Source: Macrostomum lignano | Lineage: Eukaryota | Direction of reading: 5' to 3' | Assembly: GCA_002269645.1 (NCBI GenBank) | Contig: NIVC01000384.1 | Span: forward strand, 248,001 to 312,000 | Length of the DNA stretch: 64,000 nt | Part shown: one piece after another, positions 7,401 through 64,000 of the stretch | Numbering within the stretch: the stretch's first letter is position 1 | How the letters are laid out: each line of letters starts with the position of its first letter | Position numbers and translations under genes: made by a program | The notes under the pieces: generated by a model | What the model was told of the DNA's origin: nothing | Seen by the model: only the letters and a program-made list of their open reading frames with translations | The model's database searches: none

Positions 7401-10400
7401 TGGGATTTCCCTGTCTGATAGAATGGGATTTCCCTGTCTGACAGGTGGGATTTCCGTGTCTGACAGAATGGGATTTCCCTGTCTGACAGGCGGGATTTCC
7501 GTGTCTGACAGGCGGGATTTCCGTGTCTGACAGGCGGGATTTCCGTGTCTGACAGAATGGGATTTCCGTGTCTGACAGAATGGGATTTCCCTGTCTGACA
7601 GAATGAGATTTCCGTGTCTGACAGAATGGGATTTCCCTGTCTGACAGGACGGAATTTCGGTGTCTGACAGGCGGGATTTCCGTGTCTGTATCTAACAGCT
7701 CAGTTGTGTATCTAACAGCTCAGTTGTGCATCTAACAGCCCAGTTGTGTATCTAACAGCCCAGTTGTGCATCTAACAGCCCAGTTGTGTATCTAACAGCC
7801 CAGTTGTGTGTCTAACAGCCCATTTGTGTATCTAACAGCTCAGTTGTGTATCTAACAGCCCAGTTGTGTATCTAACAGCTCAGTTGTGTATCTAACAGCT
7901 CAGTTGTGTATCTAACAGCCCAGTTGTGTATCTAACAGCTCAGTTGTGTATCTAACAGCTCAGTTGTGTGTCTAACAGCTCAGTTGTGTATCTAACAGCT
8001 CAGTTGTGTATCTAATAGCCCAGTTGTGTATCTAACAGCTCAGTTGTGTGTCTAACAGCTCAGTTGTGTATCTAACAGCTCAGTTGTGTATCTAATAGCC
8101 CAGTTGTGTGTCTAACAGCTCAGTTGTGTATCTAATAGCCCAGTTGTGTATCTAACAGCCCAGTTGTGTATCTAACAGCTCAGTTGTGTGTCTAACAGCC
8201 CAGTTGTGTATCTAACAGCCCAGTTGTGTATCTAACAGCCCAGTTGTGTATCTAACAGCTCAGTTGTGTATCTAACAGCTCAGTTGTGTAACCAACAGTC
8301 GTGTTCCTTGTCTCCCCCAGGGTGTCGACACTCAGTTAAACAAACTCGGTGCGGATTTGGACGGTCGGGTTGGCGAGCTGTCTACAGCAGTGCAGGGCGT
8401 CTCCCAGCTGCTGGCGTCAGTGCAGGAGACTCAGCGACAGATTCTCGAGAAGTTGGGTGAGCGGCCCACGGAGCCCATTCCTGCTGTGGACCCGCAGCTC
8501 GAGTCGCGAGTACGCAGTGTGGTGCTGGAGATGTACCAGGCGCCGCCGGCCTGGTTTGAGGAGGCGGCCAGACAGGCTGCATCAGCGGCTCTGCAGGTGA
8601 GAGGAGCGGCGAAGATTTTTTACATCTTTCCACATATTTCTATGTTTTTCCACTTTTTTACCACATTTTCCACGTCTTTCCACATCTTTCCACATCTTTC
8701 CATATCATTCCACATCTTTCCATATCTTTCCACGTCTTTCCACATCTTTCCACATATTTCCACATCTTTCCACGTCTTTCCATATCTTTCTACATCTTTC
8801 CACATCTTTTCAAATCTTTCCACATCTTTCCACATCTTTCCACATTTTTTCTGCGTCTTTCCACGCCTTTCCACATCTTTCCATATCTTTCCACATCTTT
8901 CCATGTCATTCCACATTTTTCCAAATCTTTCCACATCTTTCCACATCTTTCCAAATCTTTCCACGTCTTTCCACATCTTTCCACATCTTTCTATGTTTTT
9001 CCACTTTTTACCACATTTTTTCACGTCTTTCCACATCTTTCCAAATCTTTCCACGTCTTTCCACATCTTTCCACATCTTTCTATGTTTTTCCACTTTTTA
9101 CCACATTTTTTCACGTCTTTCCACATCTTTCCACATCTTTCCATATCATTCCACATCTTTCCATATCTTTCCACGTCTTTCCACATCTTTCCACATATTT
9201 CCACATCTTTCCACGTCTTTCCATATCTTTCCACACCTTTCCATGTCATTCCACTTTTTTCCACATCTTTCCACGTCTTTACATATCTTTCCACATTTTT
9301 TCTGCGTCTTTCCACGTCTTTCCACATTTTTCCACATCTTTCCACATCTTTCGATAACTTTTCACTTCATTACACATCTTTCCACATCTTTCCACGTCTT
9401 TTCACGTCATTCCACCTCTTTCACATCTCTCCACATCTTTTCACATCTTTTCAAATCTTTCCACATCTTTCCACACATTTCCACATATTTCCACATCTTT
9501 CCATATCTTTCCCACATCTTTCCACATCTTTACACCTCTTTCCACATCTTTTCACATCTTTTCACATATTTCCACGTCTTTCCACCTTTTTCCACATTTT
9601 TCCACATCTTTCCACGTCTTTCCACCTTTTTCCACATCTTTCCATATCTTTTCCACATCTTTCCACATCTTTCCACCTCTTTCCACATCTTTTCACATCT
9701 TTTCACATATTTCCACGTCTTTCCACCTTTTTCCACATTTTTCCACATCTTTCCACATCTTTCCACGTCTTTCCACATCTTTCCACATCTTTCCATATCT
9801 TTCCACATTTTTACACGTCTTTCCACATCTTTCCACATCTTTCCATAACTTTCCACTTCATTACACATCTTTCCACATCTTTCCACGTCTTTCCACGTCA
9901 TTCCACCTCTTCCACATCTTTCCACATCTTTTCACGTCTTTTCATATCTTTCCACATCTTTCCACATATTTCCACATATTTCCACATCTTTCCATATCTT
10001 TCCACATCTTTTCACATCTTTTCACATCTTTCCACGTCTTTCCACCTTTTTCCACATTTTTCCACATCTTTCCATATCTTTCCACATTTTTCCACGCCTT
10101 TCCACAACTTTCCACTTCATTACACATCTTTCCACCTTTTTCCACGTATTCCACGTCATCAAACGAATTTCCACACATTTCCACTGTCAAGGCCACGCCG
10201 GTGTCGGTGCGGGAGCTTGGATCCCCGGTTCTGGAGCAGCTTCGCCCGGTTCAAGCGCCGCCGCCGAAGCCGCCGACGCCGCCGCCTCCCCCGCCGGAGG
10301 AGCCGCCGAGCCCGGAGGAGGAGAGCAGCAGCTCCGAAAGCGACGACGACGACCGGACGACGGTGCGGCCGCAGGTGGACGATCCGACAACCGGCCGGAT

Positions 10401-18188: not shown

Positions 18189-19694
18189 TCAGCAGATGGT
18201 CTCGCACACGTTGCTGTAAACCAGATCTTGGTGCACCAGAACGGAGACCATCCTGTTCAAGTCAGCATCTTCGCCGACCCCGCCGCTGCCGCTCGGCTCT
18301 ACAATGGTGTGTTTGCCGCGGCCGCAGATGGCGCTGTTGTTCCTGAAACGGACCATCTCGTCGGCGGTTCCGACCGCGCCAGCTTGAAGTTGTCGGCGAA
18401 GACGCCGCAGGCGCATTCGCTGCTGGCGACGCTGAATCGGGCCGCCGTAGGAGAGCGACGGACTGGCGCCGGCGGTCTCGTCAGCCGAGCCGCCGTCGTT
18501 GTTGGCTGCGACGGCGGCAGCAGCGTCGGCAGCGTTGGCTGCGGCGCTGATGCGGGCGGCAACTGCGGGACAAAAAGTTTTCAAGAAACAGCGTCGAAAA
18601 TCGCGATTAAAGCCGACGTAGAGAAAGAAGTTGAGCGCAGAGTTCAGGCTGAGCATCAAGTCGCTGATCTCGCGGACGCCCCGGCGAAAATTGCTGGCCG
18701 TCTCGACGTAGCCCCAGCCAAGCAGGGACAGCAGGGCGTCGGGCAGGCTGAACACGATGGCGCAGAGGATCACCACGGCCAGCATGAGGGTCACGCGGTT
18801 GCGGGTGGCCAGCCGCTTGTTGGCCCGAGTGGCTCTGACGGCCATGGTGATTCGCACGTTCAGGCAGAACAAAATCAGTAGCGGCAGAGGCGACCGCACG
18901 AGGCTCTGGGCTTTGGCATAGATATTGGAATACGGAAAATTGGTCCAAAGTTTGCTTGGCATCGGCCACGGTGTGCAGTTAGTGCTAGTAGAATTGCTTT
19001 CGGGCCATGTATAATTGTCACGCAGAGAGCGCGTGATTTTGCTGCTAAAAATAGCATCTTCTGTAGGGATCGATGAACTGACGTCACTGTTAGGTCGCGC
19101 GGAGCTATAAATAGCAACATCCGAAGTGACATCATGGCTAGTGATGTTTCTAAAAATAGCATCATCGGGTGCCGTTGCCGGCTGTTTGCAAACGGTCTCG
19201 TAGCGCAGCAAGTAGGGCCAGGTGATGATCAGCACCAGCAGGAAGGTGACCAGAGACGCTTTCCGGGCTTTGGCTACGGTGAGCGAGTAGCGACTCCAGC
19301 CCGGTTGAGTCACCATCAGGCAGCGTTCGACGGCCACGGCCACGGTGAGCCAGGCAGCGCAGCCTGAGGCGTACTGCGACAAGAAGAATGAGTAGGGATA
19401 CAGCCAGGCAAATAGACGGTGGCCGGGCATCAGGCTGGCCGGGAAGTAGAGAAAATCGTTGCCAAGTTTGAGCAGGTCCGCCCCGGCTAGGCCGGTCAGG
19501 TAGGCGTTGGTGCTGCTGCAGCGGAGGGCCCGGCGGCTGAACACCGCGACGCACAGGACGCTGCCAACGCAGCCGAGAATGGACACAAAGGGACAGAGCA
19601 GGACGCCGGTGACAAACTGGGCTCGCTGGAAGAATTCCTCGGCAGAGGCGTCAGAGGCGTCGGCCTCGGAATCACTCAGACTCTGCAGGGACAT
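18189..19694 (-). CDS. Intronless rhodopsin-class GPCR, peptide-receptor type (FMRFamide/myosuppressin/sex-peptide-receptor-like), about 501 aa
   Basis: Seven hydrophobic segments. Motifs: TM1 GCVGSVL, TM2 YLTGLAGADLL, TM3 WLTVAVAVERC (DRY equivalent), TM6 FSLPD, TM7 LNSALNFFLY. First ATG at 19694. Confidence 0.9.
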   Translation of the reverse strand: MSLQSLSDSEADASDASAEEFFQRAQFVTGVLLCPFVSILGCVGSVLCVAVFSRRALRCSSTNAYLTGLAGADLLKLGNDFLYFPASLMPGHRLFAWLYPYSFFLSQYASGCAAWLTVAVAVERCLMVTQPGWSRYSLTVAKARKASLVTFLLVLIITWPYLLRYETVCKQPATAPDDAIFRNITSHDVTSDVAIYSSARPNSDVSSSIPTEDAIFSSKITRSLRDNYTWPESNSTSTNCTPWPMPSKLWTNFPYSNIYAKAQSLVRSPLPLLILFCLNVRITMAVRATRANKRLATRNRVTLMLAVVILCAIVFSLPDALLSLLGWGYVETASNFRRGVREISDLMLSLNSALNFFLYVGFNRDFRRCFLKTFCPAVAARISAAANAADAAAAVAANNDGGSADETAGASPSLSYGGPIQRRQQRMRLRRLRRQLQAGAVGTADEMVRFRNNSAICGRGKHTIVEPSGSGGVGEDADLNRMVSVLVHQDLVYSNVCETIC

Positions 19695-19964
19695 GCCGCA
19701 GTTTGGGGACAATCGAGATGAGCAAGGTGTAGCAAATTTGGCTTATTATTAGCACCTGAGGCGGGCTGCTCGAGGACTCAAAGCGGAACCTCATTCGACT
19801 GAGGAAGAATTAATTTCCTTACCCAATGGGAGCAATGCAGTTGAAAATCTTTCAAAAATGCATGAAGCCATGCGTGAATTCATAACAGAAACTCGAAAGT
19901 GGCACTCAGACTTTCCTAGCGGTTTTTTATAGCTTTTCCATCGAGAATTCGGTTAGTGTTGCAT

Positions 19965-35050: not shown

Positions 35051-36799
35051 ATGACAACAGCCAGGTCACAGACGCAGCAACAACGCGTTAAGCTGCGCAA
35101 TGGTGCAACAACCTACGACCTTGGTCAGTGCCTCGGTCGCGGTGGCTTCGGCATCTGCTACGAGGCCATCGAGCGAAGGTATGCAAGTTGCTGCCGTCGT
35201 GGTGGCGACGCAACTGATGGCCAAGAAGCGGAAGAAAGCGATGTAGTAGTATCTGAGAGAACAGTCGCCATTAAACGAGTCTGCATGCAACAGGTGCGAC
35301 AGGCATCAAAGGAGCCGCATCTATGGTACGAGATAGGGCTGCACAGTCAGTTAAGGCACCGCAACGTGGTGGAGCTAATCGACCACTTTGTATTTGAGGA
35401 AAATGTTTACTTTGTGCTGGAGTACTGCAACAATAGATCTCTGGCGGATATTGTTCATAACGTTAAAAGCCTGCCGCTGGAACTTGCTGCCTATTATTTT
35501 AAACAGCTAATAGATGGCCTGCAATATCTTCACGATAACAGCGTCTTTCATAGGGATCTGAAGCTGAGCAACATTCTGGTTGGTGCAGATGACACTGTTA
35601 AGATTACAGACTTTGGGCTGGCGTGCACATTTACAAGGGCTTATTTGGAACGCCACATAGCCTGCGGCACGCCCAACTATCTTAGCCCAGAGGTTCTACT
35701 AAGACAGGGTCACACAACCAAAAGCGACATCTGGTCATGCGGCGTAATACTCTATGCCATGTTCGGCGGTGTGCCACCATTTCAGACAGAAACTATAACT
35801 GCAATCTACAATAATATTGTTAACTGCAGCTACACTTTCTCAAGCCGCTATCATACTGATGAAAATCAAAAAGATCTTATAGCTCAAATTCTACAGTTGG
35901 ACAGCAACGAAAGACCTAGTCTAGGACAGATCGCTGGACACCCATTCTGTCAGTATGCCACGACTTACAAGGCCCTATTGAGCAAGGAGAGCAACAGAGC
36001 AGCCAGTTGCATTGGTCTTCGTCGCTCTAAAAGTATGCGAAACTTATCAAAAAGCCTTTCAAACCTGTTCTCCAAGCAATCAAGAACCGACCTGCGAAAG
36101 TCCACTGAAAAGCTATTCAATCGGCATGTTGCGTTGCCGCTATCGAAAAGTCTGACAGTGGTAGATCTGAGAATAGTGCGCACTACACAGTTAATTGACT
36201 ACTTTCGCGGAGAGCTAGCCTGGCAGAAGCGAGTGACAGAATTTAGCAGCGAGTGGATAACTTGGTGGCGAGACTGTTCAAACGTATGCGGTCTGTACTA
36301 CCAGCTCTCCAATGGTTTCAACTGCGCGCTGTACAATGATCAGACTGGTTGCTTAAGATCAACGCGAACTGGGCGCTATTACTTTGTCAATTTAAAAGCG
36401 CAGCGTCAACTTTTCCACGAAACGCAAGCAGAGTCGGCAGAGAGATTCTTCCAACCGCTAGTGAAAGACATTGATGAGGCCTTTAAAGGTGTAAAAACTA
36501 ATAGCAAATTGCAGGAGCAGCTGAGCTGGGTTAGTCAAAGCCGAAGCACCGGGACGCCAAACTACCTAGTGAACTGGAGGAATTTCTCCAACGGCTACTA
36601 TCACGTGTTTCACATGCGCGATCAATCGGTACAAGTGAACTTTGCCGACTGGTTCATACTACGCATATGCGGCCAGCTTTGCTATTTTTATCAGCCAGCA
36701 AAAAAAGGCTTTGTAGTCGAAACGGCCGACTTTCAGGCTTGGTGTTCGCAAGATCACAATGCGGAACTAGTTGAAGTGTTGTGCAGCATTTTCCTGTGA
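35051..36799 (+). CDS. Intronless divergent polo-like kinase, 582 aa (kinase domain plus two degenerate polo boxes)
   Basis: GRGGFGICYE, VAIK, HRDLKLSN, DFGLA, CGTPNYLSPE and DIWSCG. PB1-like WITWWRDCSNVCGLYYQLSNG...YND and PB2-like SVQVNF. Single ORF. Confidence 0.9.
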   Translation: MTTARSQTQQQRVKLRNGATTYDLGQCLGRGGFGICYEAIERRYASCCRRGGDATDGQEAEESDVVVSERTVAIKRVCMQQVRQASKEPHLWYEIGLHSQLRHRNVVELIDHFVFEENVYFVLEYCNNRSLADIVHNVKSLPLELAAYYFKQLIDGLQYLHDNSVFHRDLKLSNILVGADDTVKITDFGLACTFTRAYLERHIACGTPNYLSPEVLLRQGHTTKSDIWSCGVILYAMFGGVPPFQTETITAIYNNIVNCSYTFSSRYHTDENQKDLIAQILQLDSNERPSLGQIAGHPFCQYATTYKALLSKESNRAASCIGLRRSKSMRNLSKSLSNLFSKQSRTDLRKSTEKLFNRHVALPLSKSLTVVDLRIVRTTQLIDYFRGELAWQKRVTEFSSEWITWWRDCSNVCGLYYQLSNGFNCALYNDQTGCLRSTRTGRYYFVNLKAQRQLFHETQAESAERFFQPLVKDIDEAFKGVKTNSKLQEQLSWVSQSRSTGTPNYLVNWRNFSNGYYHVFHMRDQSVQVNFADWFILRICGQLCYFYQPAKKGFVVETADFQAWCSQDHNAELVEVLCSIFL

Positions 36800-50029: not shown

Positions 50030-51137
50030 GTCCTACCCCTGATCTGTCTCACTCTACCCCTGATCTGTCTCACTCTACCCCTGATCTGTCTCACTCTACC
50101 CCTGATTTGTCTCACTCTACCCCTGATTTGTCTCACTCTACCCCTGATTTGTCTCACTCTACCCCTGATCTGTCTCACTCTACCCTTGATCTGTCTCACT
50201 CTACCCCTGATCTGTCTCACTCTACCCCTGATTTGTCTCACTCTACCCCTGATCTGTCTCACTCTACCCCTGATTTGTCTCACTCTACCCCCGATCTGTC
50301 TCACTCTACCCCTGATCTGTCTCACTCTACCCTTGATCTGTCTCACTCTACCCCCGATCTGTCTCACTCTACCCCTGATCTGTCTCACTCTACCCCTGAT
50401 TTGTCTCACTCTACCCCTGATCTGTCTCACTCTACCCCTGATTTGTCTCACTCTACCCCCGATCTGTCTCACTCTACCCCTGATCTGTCTCACTCTACCC
50501 TTGATCTGTCTCACTCTACCCCCGATCTGTCTCACTCTACCCTTGATCTGTCTCACTCTACCCCGGATCTGTCTCACTCTACCCCCGATCTGTCTCACTC
50601 TACCCCTGATCTGTCTCACTCTACCCTTGATCTGTCTCACTCTACCCCTGATCTGTCTCACTCTACCCCCGATCTGTCTCATTCTGCCCTTGATCTGTCT
50701 CACTCTACCCCCGATCTGTCTCACTCTACCCCTGATTTGTCTCACTCTACCCCTGATCTGTCTCACTCTACCCCTGATTTGTCTCACTCTACCCCTGATT
50801 TGTCTCACTCTACCCCTGATTTGTCTCACTCTACCCCGGATCTGTCTCACTCTACCCCGGATCTGTCTCATTCTACCCCCGATCTGTCTCACTCTACCCC
50901 TGATCTGTCTCATTCTACCCCTGATCTGTCTCACTCTACCCTTGATCTGTCTCACTCTACCCCCGATCTGTCTCACTCTACCCCTGATTTGTCTCACTCT
51001 ACCCCTGATTTGTCTCACTCTACCCCGGATCTGTCTCACTCTACCCCGGATCTGTCTCATTCTACCCCCGATCTGTCTCACTCTACCCCCGATCTGTCTC
51101 ACTCTACCCCTGATCTGTCTCATTCTACCCCTGATAC
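50030..51137. repeat. 21-bp minisatellite (CTGATCTGTCTCACTCTACCC)n, about 52 copies
   Basis: Tandem periodicity; gives the RVRQIRG ORFs. Confidence 0.95.
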
Positions 51138-53159: not shown

Positions 53160-53714
53160 TTAGAGACCATTGTTCACGTGATGACAGATCACTGCGCACC
53201 GACGCATGACGCATCGATAGCTCAGGCTGTTGTGCCGCCTGGCGCAGTCCCTGTTGGTGAAGCACTGGACACGAAGCACGAAGCAGTCACCGTTAGAGTG
53301 AAACAAAAATCGCTTGCTGATGGCAGGACCCTGCTGCTGCGGCTGGTTCTCCGACTGCTGCAGGTTGCGGGCTCTGGGGTCAATGCTGAGCCACTCGAGT
53401 GCTGGGTTGGGGTCCTCATCCACTGCGCGGTTGGTTGGTTGGTTGGTTGGTTGGTTGGTTGGTTGGTTGGTTGGTTGGTTGGTTGGTTGGTTGGTTGGTT
53501 GGTTGGTTGGTTGGTTGGTTGGTTGGTTGGTTGGTTGGTTGGTTGGTTGGTTGGTTGGTTGGTTGGTTGGTTGGTTGGTTGGTTGGTTGGTTGGTTGGTT
53601 GGTTTGTTGATAAAAAGACTTACCCAGTCCAACGTGAAAGCCGCCAACAAAGACTATTGGGCCAATGCCAGCTACTAGAATCGCAAGCAGAGCAGTTCTC
53701 AGTTGAGTGTGCAT
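53160..53714 (-). CDS. Two-exon gene for a 117-aa secreted Cys-rich prepropeptide
   Basis: Exon 1 is 53714-53624 (ATG, hydrophobic signal-like [24 protein letters not shown], donor G|GTAAGT). Exon 2 is 53422-53160 (acceptor CGCAG|TG, phase 1 matches). An acidic/Gln propeptide is followed by a KR site and a 49-aa tail with 6 Cys. Confidence 0.7.
53429..53603. repeat. (TTGG)n microsatellite making up most of the 201-bp intron
   Basis: Perfect tetranucleotide run. Confidence 0.95.
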
Positions 53715-54014: not shown

Positions 54015-54657
54015 AGATGCACAGGGGATCAGATAGATGCACAGGGGATCAGATAGATGCACAGGGGATCAGATAGATGCACAGGGGATCAGATAGATGC
54101 ATAGGGGATCAGATAGATGCACAGGGGATCAGATAGATGCACAGGGGATCAGATAGATGCACAGGGGATCAGATAGATGCATAGGGGATCAGATAGATGC
54201 ATAGGGGATCAGATAGATGCACAGGGGATCAGATAGATGCACAGGGGATCAGATAGATGCACAGGGGATCAGATAGATGCATTGGGGATCAGATAGATGC
54301 ACAGGAGATCAGATAGATGCACAGGGGATCAGATAGATGCACAGGAGATCAGATAGATGCACAGGGGATCAGATAGATGCACAGGGCATCAGATAGATGC
54401 ACAGGGCATCAGATAGATGCACAGGGGATCAGATAGATGCACAGGGGATAAGATAGATGCACAGGGGATCAGATAGATGCACAGGGCATCAGATAGATGC
54501 ACAGGGATCAGATAGATGCACAGGGATCAGATAGATGCACAGGAGATCAGATAGATGCACAGGAGATCAGATAGATGCACAGGAGATCAGATAGATGCAC
54601 AGGGGATCAGATAGATGCACAGGGGATCAGATAGATGCACAGGAGACGATATAGATG
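54015..54657. repeat. 20-bp minisatellite (GATGCACAGGGGATCAGATA)n, about 32 copies
   Basis: Tandem periodicity. Confidence 0.95.
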
Positions 54658-55344
54658 TAAATGAGATTCGATAGAAGGATAGGAAGACTTATAGACAGGC
54701 AAGTTTAAGTACAAGTCAACATTTAAAAAAATATCAACATCATAGACAACCGCCTACCCCATACCGGTACAGCCTCCCACTCTTCATCGGAGCCGATTCC
54801 AAAGGATGTCCAAAATAAGGGTTAAAGATGTTTCTGCTGGCAGGACTGGGCCCACACTCACTTGAGCTGAAGAGAACCAACGACTATTGGTGAGTATAAG
54901 ACACAAAATTTTCAAGCAAACAGCCCTGCTGGATAATGTCGGCTTGCATGCGGGCTGCATGTGTTTATGGATAGCAAGGGGGCTGGAGGGCGAGGCGGTG
55001 GGGATCGATCTGAGGCGGACCGGGTAGCTATTAGTTAATTGACAAATTTTAGATAAACAGACTGGCTAGTTTGTTTTTGGCGTCAATGCTGGTATTTTTT
55101 ATGCTTGTGTAAACAGAAGAGAAATGTCATACGTTTTAGATAGGAATTAGGGAAGGGTAAAGACAGATAGAAAGAGAGGGGAGAGACAAGTAAAAGAGGG
55201 GAGAGACAGGTAAGAGAGGGGAGAGACAGGTAAGAGAGGGGAGAGACAGGTAAGAGAGGGGAGAGACAGGAAAGACAGGGGACAGAGTAAGAGAGGGAAG
55301 AGGAGAGACAGGTGATAGAGGAGAGAGAGATGGGTGATGGATAG

Positions 55345-57075
<1,731 letters not shown>

Positions 57076-60000
57076 AGACAGGGCGGTGAACTGTAGCGGT
57101 GCTAACAAAACATCAATCAGTGGTTAATCGCTATTTATTGCAATAACAAGCAATATCCGGTGAGCAGTGGGTCTAATGCAATCGCCGGGGCGCACCGCAC
57201 AGTCAGAGAGGCCTATAGGCATCGGACGCACACAAAATGCCCAGCTGACCATCAGCCAGTCAGCTGTGCTGCGGGCTACGCAGATTTGCTATACAAGTAG
57301 CTGAGTGGGCGGACTCGATCACTCGATCGAGGTCGCGACCCCTCGAGGCGGCAATCGAGCATCGAGGCTTTATTTTGACCCGCGCAAACCGCAAGGCGTC
57401 CCCGATGCAAGAAATTATTGTGTATTGTATAATAATTTTACAGGCTGAGAGGTCAATGAGGATATAGTAAGTTGTTTTTGCTTCTGACTTGGAATGTATA
57501 AAAATAGCAACTGCCTTATATGGCTTCGGTTGTAAGGGCTGATTCATGCTAGTATTTACGGGTATTGATGGTCAGCGCTACTTCGATTCCTAATCCAAAA
57601 TTGAGTAAACTATATATGTAGTGTTCCATTATAGATGCCTTCTCTTGGTTCTGGCGCCCCTGCTGAAGCCGCCCCTGGTGCTGGCACTGACCCAATTAAA
57701 GTAGCGCTCCTCAAGATTCCTCAGTAATAAGAATTCATGGCCCTATACGCCACTCTGTACATACATTGTATATGCACTTAGAGGTTTCTACAGTATGTGC
57801 ATGTACGAGTATTTTCAACGCCAATCTTTGCGAAGTCAATTTCATATGTTGATGTTGATTGATGCCAAAAAACTGTGGCACAACCATGTACACATAGTAC
57901 ATGTAATTGCTGTACATGTGAGGACAATTAAATAATTTACCGATATATCGCCGCTGTTCTAAGTAAGTATTTTTTAAATGATGACGTTATCGATCCTAGC
58001 AACAACTATAACAGCGGAAAATTCGCAGCTACAATGTACATGCTACATGTTACATGTACCAAAGTTCAATTAAGATAGTTTCGCTGCGTGTTTGCCGATA
58101 TGGCTGAGATCTGGAAAATTCAAAGGCTTTTCCCTGGATTTTCCATGAATTTTCCATGAATTTTCTTTATCGTATATTCCCTTAATCTCGACGCTTTCAA
58201 AGCGCTGAAAACCTACGGGTGATATGGATGCAGCAGTGCGGTAAACTGTTGTGTTTTGGCTTAGCTTACTGCTGCTAGGATCAGGATCAAAATTCGCAAG
58301 CGCTCGTGTCAGTTTGCATGGTAGGCAGTGGATGAAGCACCAAGCAATCAAGCCTTTTCGATTGCGTGCAGCAGCATCAATGCAACGGCAGCACTCCCGC
58401 CTTGCATGCATGTACATGTAAATGCATGTATACAGTACTAGTTTGCGACTATTTTTTTTATGTCATATAGTTGATAGAGTGAAAAGGCGTCTTGCCTCGT
58501 AGAATACAAAAACGTTTTGTAGATTAATGTTTTTGGCTAAATGTCTGCTTGAAATTTTCAAAATATTGGACTACACATTTTGATGTACATCTAAATATAC
58601 TAAATCTCTAAGGTTTGTATGCTTGTCCATAACGCTCTAGAGCGAGCAATTCTTGACCAATTTTGATCGCGTTTTCGCCAAAATTCAATACTAAATACTG
58701 AACTAAATGTACAGGGCCGTAAATTATTCGAAATAGGTTACCTTATATTTTTGTATAAAAATTATCTAAATATCTAATTATCTAAAATTATCTAAATAAT
58801 TTTTTAGCTTTTCGATTTCATTTTTTAGTTTTTTTAGCTTAACCGGTAAAATTTATTGTTTTTCGTTGCTTTGTTTTATTTTGTAATAGTTTATCATAGC
58901 AGTGCGCAAGATTTTAAAAAGGAAATATTTTAGAGTTTTGACAGGTGGAAATTATTAATTATATACACAGTCGAGTCGCTCTCCTCTTATAATATACTTG
59001 CAAGAGTGCAAGACATAGAAAGTTTGTCTGTTTATTGCTTGGTACAAGCGAGCGACTTTTATAGTGCTAAGTGTTAATTTAATACTTTCCTAACAATAGA
59101 AGGGCTTACTTGTGATAGAAGAAAATTTATTCTATACTTTGATTTCATCATCTTTTATGGTTAGGTCTATATCCATATGAGTTATGTAGGATTTGATCTA
59201 GATCTCGTAAAAAAATCACTATTAAGCATATCGTATTAGGATTATATCAAAGAGTTAAAAAAGCAATGTTTATAATTTTGTTCCTCTTCAAAGACAAAAG
59301 ACAAAATCAAAGAACGTAAAATACATGAAATGTGAAATTTGGCATAAATTTACTTTCATTTGCAATTTTTTTTCTTTTAAAATGGTGCCAATAATGCGGA
59401 ATGACAAATGGGAGTTTTCTATGGCCCATACTAGCTGTGTAGAGTTGTTTGGGGCACAAAAATTTGGCTGAGTTTTATTGAGCTCATAACGTCAACTAGT
59501 AATATAACTGGTGAAAAACATTTTTAAACGGCATTGAGCATTGCAAACGAGCCACCACATAGTCTCGTCAGTACTTGCTGTCACTTTTATCAGATCCCTT
59601 GAATTCATATTTAGTTCTGTCAGTGCCTGTGTCCGGCGCACACATAGCATGATCCTGACTTTAGTTATTATAAAATATTTTTAGTAGAATGATAGTTTGT
59701 GATTTGTATTAAATTTACCTTATTTTTGAAGCACTCAAATTTTATTTAAATTAACTGCTTTACCACAGTTTATTTTGTATGTGTTCAACTATTTAGTTTC
59801 TAAGAAGCACAAAGAGATTGTACTATAAAGCTGTTATAGCATAAGTTCAATTGTATGTCAAAACTTTTACACTGCCAAGATAGGAGCAAGAATGATCTTA
59901 TCCTACAATGGCTTTATAAAATGGGCCCAATATTTTTCAAATCTAGTTTCTAAGAAATACAGGATGTTTTGGAACCTAGTTTCTAAGAATTGCGTGTGCT

Positions 60001-60160
60001 GTTTAAAATTCATAGTTTTTTTAGAAACGATTTGTAGCTGTAATGAGAATGCACATTTTAAAATTTCAAAATCACTACTGTAATGAGAACATCCATTTGA
60101 CAGTTCAAGGACTCTACAAGGCCTAAAAGTACACTGCACAGTAGTAGCACACTGACTGAG

Positions 60161-60882
60161 ATGCCCTCATCAGGCAATGGCGGCAGTTCTAGCGGCAGTT
60201 TGCATCATCGGAAAAGGAAAAGCCGACGGCACAGCGGTGGCAGCGGCTCTGCTGCCCCCAAGGTTTGCCCCGTGTGCGAGACCCTCCTCCCAGCTGACAG
60301 CCGGCACCGCCAGCCGGAGGACCACATCCTTGACCAGCTCCGCTCTGTGTTCACCCGCGGTGCCAGCCAATCATTTTACCATCATGCTCTGCAAATTCAC
60401 TGGGATTCCTTTTTCATGGCCATGCCGGCAGACTTCCCCTTACCCTACTGCCGGCTCTGCTGCATGCACTTTCCCGGCTTTGTGCCGTTCGCGCACCACC
60501 TGTGCCATCGAGCCAGCCTGATTGTGGACACCAAAACTGACCGACTGCACACTGAACTGCTGGGCCATTTTGTAGTGTTTCTAGCCGGAGTTGGCAACCC
60601 AGCGCTGGAACTGCGCCTGCAGGCTGAGAGAGCCGGCGAGTTCCTGTGCCGCCGCTGCCAGCCGGGCATCGAGAAGCTGCAACTGAAATCTGCCGCAGCC
60701 AAGGCGGCTGCCGCTGCCAACCGGTCTGCCGCTACCGCCGCCACCGCGGTGACCTCTTCGTCTGATTTTGCTGTCAAGCTGGAGCCCACCGGCACCCCGT
60801 CCGTGCTGCTGCCGCCACCTGCTCAGCCTGAGCAGCAGCAGCAGGAGCAGCAGCAGGAGCAACAGCAGCACTCTTCTTATCA
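60161..60882 (+). CDS. First or internal coding exon of a putative nuclear Cys/His-rich (zinc-binding) protein
   Basis: GC-rich 241-codon ORF with an NLS-like HRKRKSRR, CPVC, CRLC..HH.C and CRRC motifs, and poly-Ala/poly-Gln. A GTGAGT donor at 60883 indicates the gene continues. Confidence 0.7.
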
Positions 60883-61654
60883 GTGAGTTCTGTACTTCCG
60901 TAATTTCCGGTTTCTATTAAAATAGCAAGATACAACGGAGTCTTTTTTTAAAGAATTTAATAATATTTTGGAATCTCTTCAATAATTGCATATTATATTT
61001 TAATATGGTTTCTAAAAATTGGGTGAAACTTCTATAATCTAGTTTCTATAAAATAGATGACTTTTTGAAATCTAGTTTCAGCGTATTAGGTAAACTTTGA
61101 GATGTATTTTCTAATCACGTAGGGGTTACTTCTGCCTTCTGGAATAATTCTACAGCTGACACCAAGCTTTCGCAGGGATTTTTCCTGTATTATGGGAAAT
61201 CCCACCCGGTTAGCCACTAAGCCTAACAAGTGTACAAGCTGTGATTCCTTCTCTCTGAAATCTCTCTCAAAGAACTGCGACAACGGAAACGAATTATTTG
61301 ATCTGGCTCTCAGTTGGCTCCTATTTATAGTAAAAATTTTCCTAACTATTTTAAACAAAACAAGATATACAAAATATTTCAAAATATTCGTTCGGTATAA
61401 CAAAAAATAAAGCTTTGCAATTATAGGTTTCTAAGAAAGTTTGCCTACTAAAAGCGAAGCCTATTACACTAAGAAAAGCAATGCGTTTTAGAATCTACTA
61501 GCAATCTTCGCCCCCCGATGGGGGACATCTGGTTAGAATCCTTGTTCTTTACAAATAACAAATAGACAGCGAACTAAAGCCTTCAAAAAACAACAACAGA
61601 CATTCCCTCTAAAAACAAAACATCCCAAGACAGCAAGCATCCTCAGACAGCATT

Positions 61655-61870
61655 CAAGCATCGATCCCAAAATAGCAAGCATCCCCCAGGTAGCAAGCAT
61701 CCCCCCGATAGCAAGCAACCCCAGATAGCAAGCATCCGCAGATAGCAAGCATTCCCCCAGACCCCAGATAGTAAGCATCCCCAGATAGCAAGCATCCCCC
61801 AGATCGCAAGCATCCCCCAGATCGCAAGCATCCCCCAGATAGCAAGCACCCCAAATAGTAAGCATCCACC
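61655..61870. repeat. About 19-bp CCCCAGATAGCAAGCATC repeat
   Basis: Imperfect tandem units. Confidence 0.8.
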
Positions 61871-61971
61871 ATACAATAAGTAAAGTAGCTAGTGCTACAA
61901 TTTCCTTAGCTCTATAGTGGCTCCTTTAAAATTGGCATGACGCTTACTTTTACGTTTGAAATTGTGTAAAT

Positions 61972-64000
61972 TTTATGTTTGACATGGTGGCTCTTTAATG
62001 TTTGACATGGTGGCTTTTTAATGTTTGACATGGTGGCTCTTTAATGTTTGACATGGTGGCTCTTTTATGTTCTACATGGTGGCTCTCTTATGTTTGATTC
62101 AGGGTTTTTTTAATGTCTGACATGGTGTCTCTTTATTGTTTGACATGGTGGCGTTTTACTGTTTGACATTATGGCTCTTTAATTTTTGACATGGTGGCTC
62201 TTTTATGTTTGAAATGGTGGCTCTTTATGTTAGACATGGTGGCTCTTTAATGTTCGACATGGTGGCTCTTTAATGTTAGACATGATGGCTCTTTAATGTT
62301 TGACATTGCGGCTCTTTTAATGTTTGACATGGTGGCTCTTTTATGTTGGACATGGTGGCTCTTTTTTGCTTGACATGGTGGCTCTTTACTGTTTGACATG
62401 GTGGCTCTTTAATGTTCGAAATGGTGGCTCTTTAATGTTTGACATGATGGCTCTTTTATGTTTGACATGGTGGCTCTTTTATGTTGGACATAGTGGTTCT
62501 TTAATGTTCGGCATTGGTTGCTCTTTTATGTTCAAAAAGGTGGCTTTTTAATGTTAGACATGGTGGCTCTTGAATGTTCGACATGGTGGCTCTTTAATGT
62601 TAGACATGGTGGCTCTTTATTGTTCGACATGATGGCTCTTTAATGTTTGACATTGCGGCTCTTTAATGTTTGACATGGTGGCTCCTTTATGTTTGACATG
62701 GTGGCTCTTTTTTGATTGACATGGTGGCTCCTTTATGTTTGACATGATGGCTCTTTTATGTTTGACATGGTGGCTCTTTAATGTTTTACGTGGTGGCTCT
62801 TTAATGTTCTTCATGGTAGCTCTTTTATGTTTGACATGGAGTCACGAATATACTTGACATGGTGACTCGTTATTGTTCGACATGGTGGCTCTTCTATGTT
62901 TGACATGGTGGCACTTTAATGTTTGACATGCTGGCTCTATAATGTTTGACATGGAGTCACATATATGTTGGACATGGTGGCTCTTTAATGTTCGACATGG
63001 TGGCTCTTTAATGTTTGACATGGTGGCTCTTCAATGTTTGACATGATGGCTCTTCAATGTTTGACATTGCGGCTCTTTAATGTTTGACATGGTGGCTCCT
63101 TTATGTTTGACATGGTGGCTGTTTTAAGTTTGACATGGTGGCTCTTTTTTGATTGACATGGTGGCTCCTTTATGTTTGACATGATGGCTCTTTTATGTTT
63201 GACATGGTGGCTCTTTTATGTTTGACATGGTGGCTGTTTTATGTTTGACATGGTGGCTCTTCTATGTTTGACATGGTGGCTCTTTAATGTTCTACATGGT
63301 GGCTCTCTTATGTTTGATTCGGGTTTTTTTTAATGTCTGACATGGTGTCCCTTTATTGTTTGACATAGTGGCTCTTTTATGTTTGACATGATGGCTCTTT
63401 AATGTTCGACATGGTGGCTCTTTAATGTTTGACATGGTGGCTCTTTAATGTTTGACCTGGTGGCACCTTAATGTAATGATGGCTCTTTAATGTTTGAAAT
63501 GGTGGCTCTTTAATGTTCGACATGGTGGCTCCTTTATGTTTAACATGGTGCTCTTAAATGTTTGACATCGTGGCTCTTTAATGTTTGACATGGTGGCTCT
63601 CTAGTGTTTCACATGGAGTCACGTCTGTGTTTGACATGGAGTCACGTATATATTTGGCATGGAGTCACGTATATGCTTTTCATGGTGGCTCTTTTATGTT
63701 TGACATGGTGGGTCTTTAATGTTTGACATGGTGGCTCTTTAATTTTTGACATGATGGCTCTTTAATGTTCGACATGATGGCTGTTTAATGTTTGTTATGT
63801 AGTCATGTGTATATGTTTTACATGGTGGCTCTTTTATGTGTGACATGGAGTCACGTATATATTTGACATGGAGTCACATATATGTTTGACATGATGGCTC
63901 TTTTATGTTTGACATGGTGGCTCTTTTATGTTTGACATGGTGGCTGTTTTATGTTTGACATGGTGGCTCTTCTATGTTTGACATGGTGGCTCTTTAATGT
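61972..64000. repeat. 23-bp satellite (TTTGACATGGTGGCTCTTTAATG)n, more than 80 copies, running off the window
   Basis: Tandem periodicity. Confidence 0.95.

Follow-up and report, generated by a model that had tools for sequence, protein, structure and literature searches.

The stretch of DNA analyzed here, referred to as the window, comprises 64,000 nucleotides of contig NIVC01000384.1 in the Macrostomum lignano assembly GCA_002269645.1. On its minus strand lies Mlig006190.g3, a small gene with two coding exons. An in-frame stop lies 8 codons ahead of the ATG start codon at 53714. Coding exon 1 (53714-53624, 91 nt) carries Met1 to Leu30 and the first base of codon 31, and it is followed by a phase-1 GT-AG intron of 201 nt (53623-53423, GTAAGT...CCGCGCAG). 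Coding exon 2 (53422-53160, 263 nt) includes the TAA stop codon, read directly at 53162-53160. Splicing exon 1 to exon 2 gives a precursor of 117 aa. An initial annotation, made from the sequence alone, had proposed these exons, the GTAAGT...CGCAG intron and the 117-aa product, and direct reading of the sequence placed all of them where it had put them.

The gene has candidate regulatory elements on both sides. A candidate core promoter with 5'UTR (54014-53715) lies in the short stretch that separates the ATG from a 20-mer minisatellite (54015-54643). This putative upstream region contains two CCAAT motifs (53858-53854 and 53784-53780) and a TATA-like TAAATAA (53805-53799). The first candidate poly(A) signal downstream of the stop, an AATAAA at 52911-52906, is approximately 250 nt away, and further AATAAA motifs occur within 100 nt beyond it. 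The CCAAT boxes and the AATAAA had been claimed at these places, and they are kept in two other genomic copies of the gene as well. Sequence comparison found the upstream region to be near-identical in the three copies. Because the copies are recent duplicates, this conservation says little about promoter function.

The peptide had been described as hidden, a description that does not hold. The precursor is 100% identical over 117/117 aa to the public protein PAA84257.1 ("hypothetical protein BOX15_Mlig006190g3", Macrostomum lignano; UniProt A0A267GFQ1), and Mlig006190.g3 is thus already annotated but uncharacterized. The GenBank annotation of GCA_002269645.1 was built solely from RNA-seq-derived transcript assemblies, and TransDecoder was used to call the ORFs (PMC5730564). 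Because of this origin, an annotated junction stands for transcript evidence, and the annotation carries the same junction that had been proposed from the sequence, 53624->53422. The agreement with a GenBank-annotated product, together with a Lys-Arg (KR) site and a cysteine framework that are kept in three diverged paralog groups, puts the gene far beyond chance. Mlig006190.g3 is a real two-exon gene that encodes a 117-aa prepropeptide and is transcribed according to the transcript-derived annotation.

A repeat-filled intron in three genomic copies

The intron is almost entirely repetitive. Tandem Repeats Finder (TRF) counted 45 copies, at 98% matches, in a (CCAA)n array at 53429-53609 that nearly fills it. 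In the window copy, the intron is divisible by 3 and free of stops, so that the unspliced ORF would encode 184 aa containing (TNQP)n. Consequently, splicing is not proven by the ORF alone. In the protein encoded by the two other copies, g1 and g2 (loci L002 and L003), the only changes are S66N and F78Y. Their introns are 235 nt (L002) and 125 nt (L003) long, compared with 201 nt in the window, and hold 50 and 26 CCAA units, compared with 43. When L002 and L003 are read without splicing, the frame shifts and stops follow ahead of the Cys-rich part, which shows that the repeat is intronic. A translated (CCAA)n, with no intron at all, does have the in-frame, stop-free 201-nt stretch of the window copy in its favor. 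Against it stand the broken frames of the other two copies, the consensus GTAAGT donor and CAG acceptor, the spliced form of the GenBank product, and the unrelated introns of 685-2201 nt that the paralogs have at the same phase-1 position. We consider the unspliced (TNQP)n protein effectively refuted and assign it practically no probability; the spliced 117-aa precursor is the form considered below. The window copy is the only one in which the repeat happens to be in frame and stop-free, which leaves a misleading continuous ORF of 184 aa.

Between any two of the three copies, 2-7 positions of the coding sequence differ, and most of these changes are synonymous. For the most divergent pair, the window copy and L003, 5/7 of the differences are synonymous. 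Identity among the copies is 98-99.4% in the coding sequence versus approximately 91-98% in the aligned flanks.

Architecture of the precursor

The precursor begins with a putative signal peptide (residues 1-25, 53714-53640), which has the n-region MHTQLR followed by an uncharged stretch at residues 7-26. Signal cleavage would probably take place at VGG|FH, between Gly25 and Phe26. The sequence V-G-G|F fits the rule of small residues at -3 and -1, and cleavage before Phe26 is further supported because the closest paralog, which reads ...CSC|FHINE-intron, aligns with ...VGG|FHVGL-intron. The propeptide (residues 26-68) is encoded by exon 1 bases 53639-53624 and exon 2 bases 53422-53310. It is acidic and Gln-rich and ends in the pair K67-R68 (53315-53310). 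The remainder is the predicted mature peptide (residues 69-117, 53309-53163), with 49 aa, a reduced mass of approximately 5.77 kDa, a pI of 9.25, a net charge of +5, 4 His, and 6 Cys in the framework C-x6-C-x5-C-x10-C-x4-C-x3-C. Two internal RR pairs, at 92-93 and 104-105, lie inside the mature part and could in principle be cleaved too. The precursor sequence has no C-terminal amidation signal and no other neuropeptide hallmark, a point against the signaling role proposed below. The overall layout that had been read from the sequence, with a putative signal peptide, a propeptide, a KR site and a 6-Cys mature peptide, is supported by the four paralog groups described below, which have the KR and the Cys framework in common.

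A family of paralogs in M. lignano

To place the precursor among known proteins, we relied on an exhaustive phmmer scan of 1.84 billion representative sequences. It returned five more proteins, all from M. lignano, two of which are chimeric or frameshifted models from an older assembly and were set aside. The other three represent further paralog groups: Mlig017203 (E 1.6e-12, 61% core identity), Mlig004136 (E 9e-7, three copies) and Mlig025436 (E 7e-5, three copies). A word-indexed protein search found nothing beyond Mlig006190 itself. A word-index profile search meant to find members beyond M. lignano returned only two family clusters; this negative result carries little weight because the search seemingly missed the query's own cluster, and the exhaustive phmmer scan provides the better negative. 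Within the 64-kb window, tblastn and a relaxed Cys-pattern scan in six frames recovered the gene itself only, and the paralog loci that were fetched lie on different contigs, with no tandem array. The family comprises four paralog groups that diverged long ago, and each of them has up to three recent copies. As far as the sequence collections reach, it is so far found only in M. lignano, and these collections hold few other macrostomid sequences.

An alignment of eight sequences from the four groups separates what is kept in the family from what is not. Signal regions are not conserved, and the pro-regions are unalignable and of very different lengths. The dibasic site lies conserved between this variable pro-region and a conserved mature peptide: K-R is invariant in 8/8 sequences, directly before an invariant Phe, and one group has a full furin-type RAKR at this place. 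The family motif is KR followed by F-[LM]-[FY]-x-S-[NG]-G-x-C-x6-C-F-x3-D-C-x9/10-C-x4-C-x3-C, where the [NG] position may also be given as x. Over KR and the mature part, 13 columns are invariant in the eight sequences, seven of them being residues other than Cys (K, R, F, S, G, F and D). In the mature part, the invariant residues are F69, S73, G75, C77, C84, F85, D89, C90, C101, C106 and C110. The three diverged M. lignano groups thus keep the Cys framework, whose loss among homologs would have spoken against the initial reading. The gene structure is likewise kept. In every group, a single GT-AG intron in phase 1 follows the hydrophobic segment at a distance of a few residues, as had been noted for the window gene, and the intron lengths of the four groups are 201, 2201, 685 and 902 nt.

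Several public models of related proteins are faulty. The models P0003, P0007, P0008, P0011 and P0013 (UniProt A0A1I8...) apparently come from an older annotation in which the peptide genes were fused to unrelated upstream ORFs or were frameshifted, as P0003 is after GDCYV. Names such as BRICHOS, Ion_trans, DUF4149, BPTI/Kunitz and ShKT, which UniProt gives to such models, are misleading for the peptide domain. We rejected the UniProt and UniRef names of related models because they contradict each other or stem from chimeric models in the older ML2 assembly, and they could not be reproduced. For Mlig017203g3 (PAA81298.1, locus L006, 6001-7451), the annotated "partial" protein begins 49 residues before the likely start Met (MPSITDGSL...), and the true precursor is probably 133 aa long.

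To gauge constraint, Nei-Gojobori estimates were made between paralogs over the 44 codons of the mature core. dS was 1.05-2.0 (saturated), dN was 0.29-0.61, and omega was 0.17-0.56. The low omega shows that the mature core is under purifying selection, and because dS is saturated, the duplications that gave rise to the paralogs are old. Venom peptides and many defense peptides evolve fast, with a conserved signal and a hypervariable mature part. The variable signal and pro-region and the conserved mature core of this family are the reverse of that pattern. Charge is not kept. The predicted mature peptides of the four groups have net charges of +5, +3, +1 and -1, with pI values from 9.25 down to 5.5. 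The mature peptide had been described as cationic, which is correct for the window paralog (+5, pI 9.25) but not for the family. Because charge in the family runs from +5 to -1, cationic character is a trait of the window paralog.

Comparison with known families and folds

A structure prediction for the whole precursor from its single sequence with AlphaFold2 was unusable (pLDDT 45). A model built with the family alignment, which is shallow with seven sequences in four groups, reached a pLDDT of 74.6 overall and 85-88 in the core. It has a predicted helix at 87-94 and a predicted beta-hairpin at 99-104/107-112. A Foldseek comparison of the model with the PDB gave nothing at E ≤ 0.001, and a profile search of PDB sequences gave chance matches only (nitric oxide synthase at E 0.86, and LDL-A modules of the VLDL receptor at E 1.5). 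In Pfam at E ≤ 10, the sole relevant match was a sub-threshold Nodulin_late, found in the Mlig006190 group only. A match of Mlig004136 to DUF5556 at E 0.065 was judged to be chance, and the Pfam matches in the chimeric model P0011 fall in its N-terminal part, which is unrelated. The family had not been recognized at the outset, and the lack of significant matches in Pfam, in the PDB sequence search and in Foldseek agrees with this. No membership in any known family can be claimed.

The resemblances that had been suggested did not fare well. For Nodulin_late (PF07127), the window protein matches over residues 69-106 with E 0.0011 and 19.7 bits (19.5 bits for a second Mlig006190 variant). The gathering threshold of 30.4 bits is not reached, and the three other groups have no match at E ≤ 10. 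The NCR peptides are likewise small and secreted, with 4 or 6 Cys. However, they are specific to legumes and lack a propeptide delimited by KR, and the host here is a flatworm, compared with the legume nodules in which NCR peptides occur. With a match below the cut-off in one of four paralog groups, the proposed NCR likeness cannot be upheld; most likely, the Cys spacing is similar by chance. The knottin likeness is unsupported, since the only cystine-dense match in Foldseek, the designed peptide 6atu_J, is not significant at E 1.9. The same can be said of scorpion K-channel toxins. CSab defensins and scorpion toxins are, as the peptide is in its model, small disulfide-rich scaffolds with a helix and a hairpin. 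This assignment was rejected because the framework has no CxC, CxxxC falls in the hairpin, and the predicted helix 87-94 holds a single Cys. With the CSab signature absent and the Foldseek matches of the predicted structure to scorpion toxins not significant (E 3.9-7.8), the proposed likeness falls away.

Other six-Cys or small disulfide-rich domains were considered as well. ShKT (PF01549) and BPTI/Kunitz (PF00014) are also six-Cys domains, of 35-58 aa, and UniRef100 labels the identical Mlig025436 mature domain as "ShKT" (A0A267DLA0) and as "BPTI/Kunitz inhibitor" (A0A1I8I8A7 and A0A1I8G0A0). We rejected both labels: they contradict each other, and none of nine family proteins has an ShK or Kunitz_BPTI Pfam match at E ≤ 10. 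Neither fold was found among the Foldseek matches at E ≤ 10, and the model has a helix and a beta-hairpin. The best Foldseek matches were to WAP domains (SLPI and elafin; 4doq_B and 2z7f_I), with TM 0.45-0.51 over 40 columns. WAP was rejected in view of E values of 0.7-1.1, a probability of approximately 0.5, 8 Cys in WAP versus 6 here, and no WAP match in Pfam.

At the level of general layout, the resemblance is closer. Metazoan prepropeptides such as prohormones, pro-defensins and venom precursors have a signal peptide, putative in this family, and the same variable propeptide, dibasic site and C-terminal Cys-rich peptide of approximately 50 aa, and a phase-1 intron adjoining the signal boundary is common to generic prepropeptides and to the window family. 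The family differs in having no sequence or fold match to curated families, one peptide per precursor, and no amidation signal. The family itself is new, and it appears to be of a familiar kind, that of disulfide-rich secreted peptides processed by a convertase.

The literature offers no earlier description. Neither the Mlig gene IDs nor the N-terminal strings of the mature peptides gave a match in the searchable full-text literature, and the gene IDs are absent from the supplements of PMC5816591, PMC7336406, PMC5730564, PMC8662610, PMC5977470 and PMC6410801, whose tables are possibly incomplete. Searches of the literature on M. lignano neuropeptides, antimicrobial peptides and cysteine-rich gland peptides returned nothing relevant. 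Within searchable papers and their supplements, the four-group peptide family is previously undescribed.

Proposed processing and role

We infer secretion, the signal cleavage site, cleavage at KR, disulfide formation and a signaling role from the features described above. The N-terminal hydrophobic segment would take the chain into the ER co-translationally and would probably be cut off at Gly25|Phe26. The C-terminal domain would fold oxidatively with three disulfides, and a subtilisin-like proprotein convertase would cut after Lys67-Arg68 in the secretory pathway. The 49-aa peptide released in this way, starting at Phe69, would act extracellularly.

With somewhat better than even confidence, we read Mlig006190.g3 as a convertase-processed secreted prepropeptide of a four-group family whose peptides are most likely specific ligands, hormone- or neuropeptide-like, for a conserved partner. 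Specific recognition by such a partner is suggested by the conservation of the cleavage site and of the residues that follow it, by purifying selection on the core, by the variation in charge, and by the dispersal of the paralogs. A specific ligand also fits better than an antimicrobial that acts on membranes through its charge, because the core and the newly formed N-terminus are constrained while signal, propeptide and charge drift. Taken as a matter of function alone, the hormone- or neuropeptide-like role is ranked first, host defense second, and a gland secretion or toxin third. This ranking is tentative, and we put the chances of the ligand role itself at rather less than even. A more specific form of the idea, which we hold to be improbable as a whole, is a peptide hormone or neuropeptide family restricted to Macrostomum or to macrostomorphs, with a fold absent from the PDB, release at KR, a dedicated receptor, and F-L-Y/F-x-S-x-G as the activating end.

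Other roles would use the same precursor in different ways. In host defense, identical processing would yield a cationic, disulfide-rich antimicrobial or defensin-like peptide that acts on microbes at the epidermis or gut, killing them or holding them in check. The mature peptide of the window paralog, small and with three probable disulfides, is strongly cationic and has 4 His; its predicted helix and beta-hairpin form a common defense-peptide shape; the sub-threshold Nodulin_late (NCR) match points the same way; and innate immunity typically involves multi-copy families restricted to a lineage. However, cationicity is no trait of the family, and a variable signal with a conserved mature part at omega < 0.6 is the opposite of the usual defense-peptide pattern, even if old host-defense families can show the same conservation. 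The invariant F-[LM]-[FY]-x-S-x-G right after the cleavage site suggests specific recognition instead, and no defensin family was matched in Pfam or Foldseek. We regard host defense as unlikely. Less probable again, and in our judgment doubtful, is a gland product without a signaling function, such as a seminal-fluid (prostate), adhesive, rhabdite or pharyngeal-gland peptide, or a toxin against prey or predators. The family fits the layout that is standard for many venom and gland peptides of invertebrates, in which a signal and a propeptide are followed by KR and a mature part on a 6-Cys scaffold. Many lineage-specific gland transcripts are known from M. lignano (PMC5977470 and PMC6410801). 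The mature region of this family, however, is conserved and not diversifying, the paralogs are dispersed with no tandem array, and the toxin matches in Foldseek are not significant (E ≥ 3.9). The four gene IDs also do not occur in the supplements that accompany the papers on the seminal-fluid screen, on adhesion and on reproduction genes. This counts for little, since the tables there list transcripts mostly under older IDs and are possibly incomplete.

The N-terminal segment also allows for a reading in which the protein is not released at all. Residues 7-30 could act as an uncleaved signal anchor of a type II membrane protein, with the Cys-rich domain on the cell surface and possibly shed at KR. 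The window paralog has 20 consecutive uncharged residues (7-26), enough length for such an anchor, and Arg6 on the N-side with DEDP on the C-side fits the positive-inside rule. Against this, G16, G18, P19, G24 and G25 interrupt the hydrophobic segment, and V-G-G|F is a good cleavage site that is aligned with C-S-C|F-H of the closest paralog. In each member of the family, a basic or polar n-region leads into a hydrophobic core and candidate -3/-1 sites, and the core of the window paralog is unusually long. In the three other groups, the core has 7-12 uncharged residues only. Cleaved signal peptides typically have cores of this length, which could not span a bilayer. A signal anchor is therefore very improbable, and a cleaved, secreted precursor remains our preferred reading.

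M. lignano is a flatworm model with working transgenesis that is used for the study of regeneration, stem cells, aging, adhesion and sexual selection. In this animal, the Cys-rich processed peptides of a conserved and lineage-restricted family provide candidate signaling or defense molecules, and they are directly approachable there through RNAi, in situ hybridization, and reporters made from the upstream region of approximately 300 bp. Because the family is without detectable relatives or a structural match, solving a structure could bring a new small disulfide scaffold to light. Orphan families of Cys-rich secreted peptides are common in invertebrate genomes, and no general principle is changed by this one. 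For flatworm biologists the Mlig006190 family is a sound lead and possibly a new small fold; to specialists it will come as no surprise.

Genomic surroundings

The window as a whole (1-64000) is extraordinarily rich in micro- and minisatellites, with 82 TRF rows. Examples of its arrays are (GATA)436, a 21-mer repeated 52 times and a 23-mer repeated 88 times, and satellite-rich stretches include 55336-57078, 50033-51135, 54015-54643, 8622-10145 and 61971-64000. The 20-mer array next to the peptide gene has 31 repeats, and only some 300 bp separate its end from the downstream ATG. All three genomic copies have kept it. A tRNA-Arg (CCT) gene is located at 215-287 on the plus strand. A long ORF on the minus strand at 18189-19712 encodes a rhodopsin-family GPCR domain (7TM_GPCR_Srw at E 3.3e-13 and 7tm_1 at E 7.4e-11). 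It belongs to a class that resembles peptide receptors and is approximately 34 kb from the peptide gene, and a link between the two is not indicated. On the plus strand, an intron-free ORF of 582 aa (35051-36799) shows a protein kinase domain (E 1.9e-61) along with a weak POLO-box match, which makes it a candidate Polo-like kinase. The neighboring annotated gene (approximately 60104-63714, plus strand; L001 1-3611) encodes a 679-aa product without a Pfam match and is syntenic in 3/3 copies of the region, where its products have 679, 679 and 681 aa.
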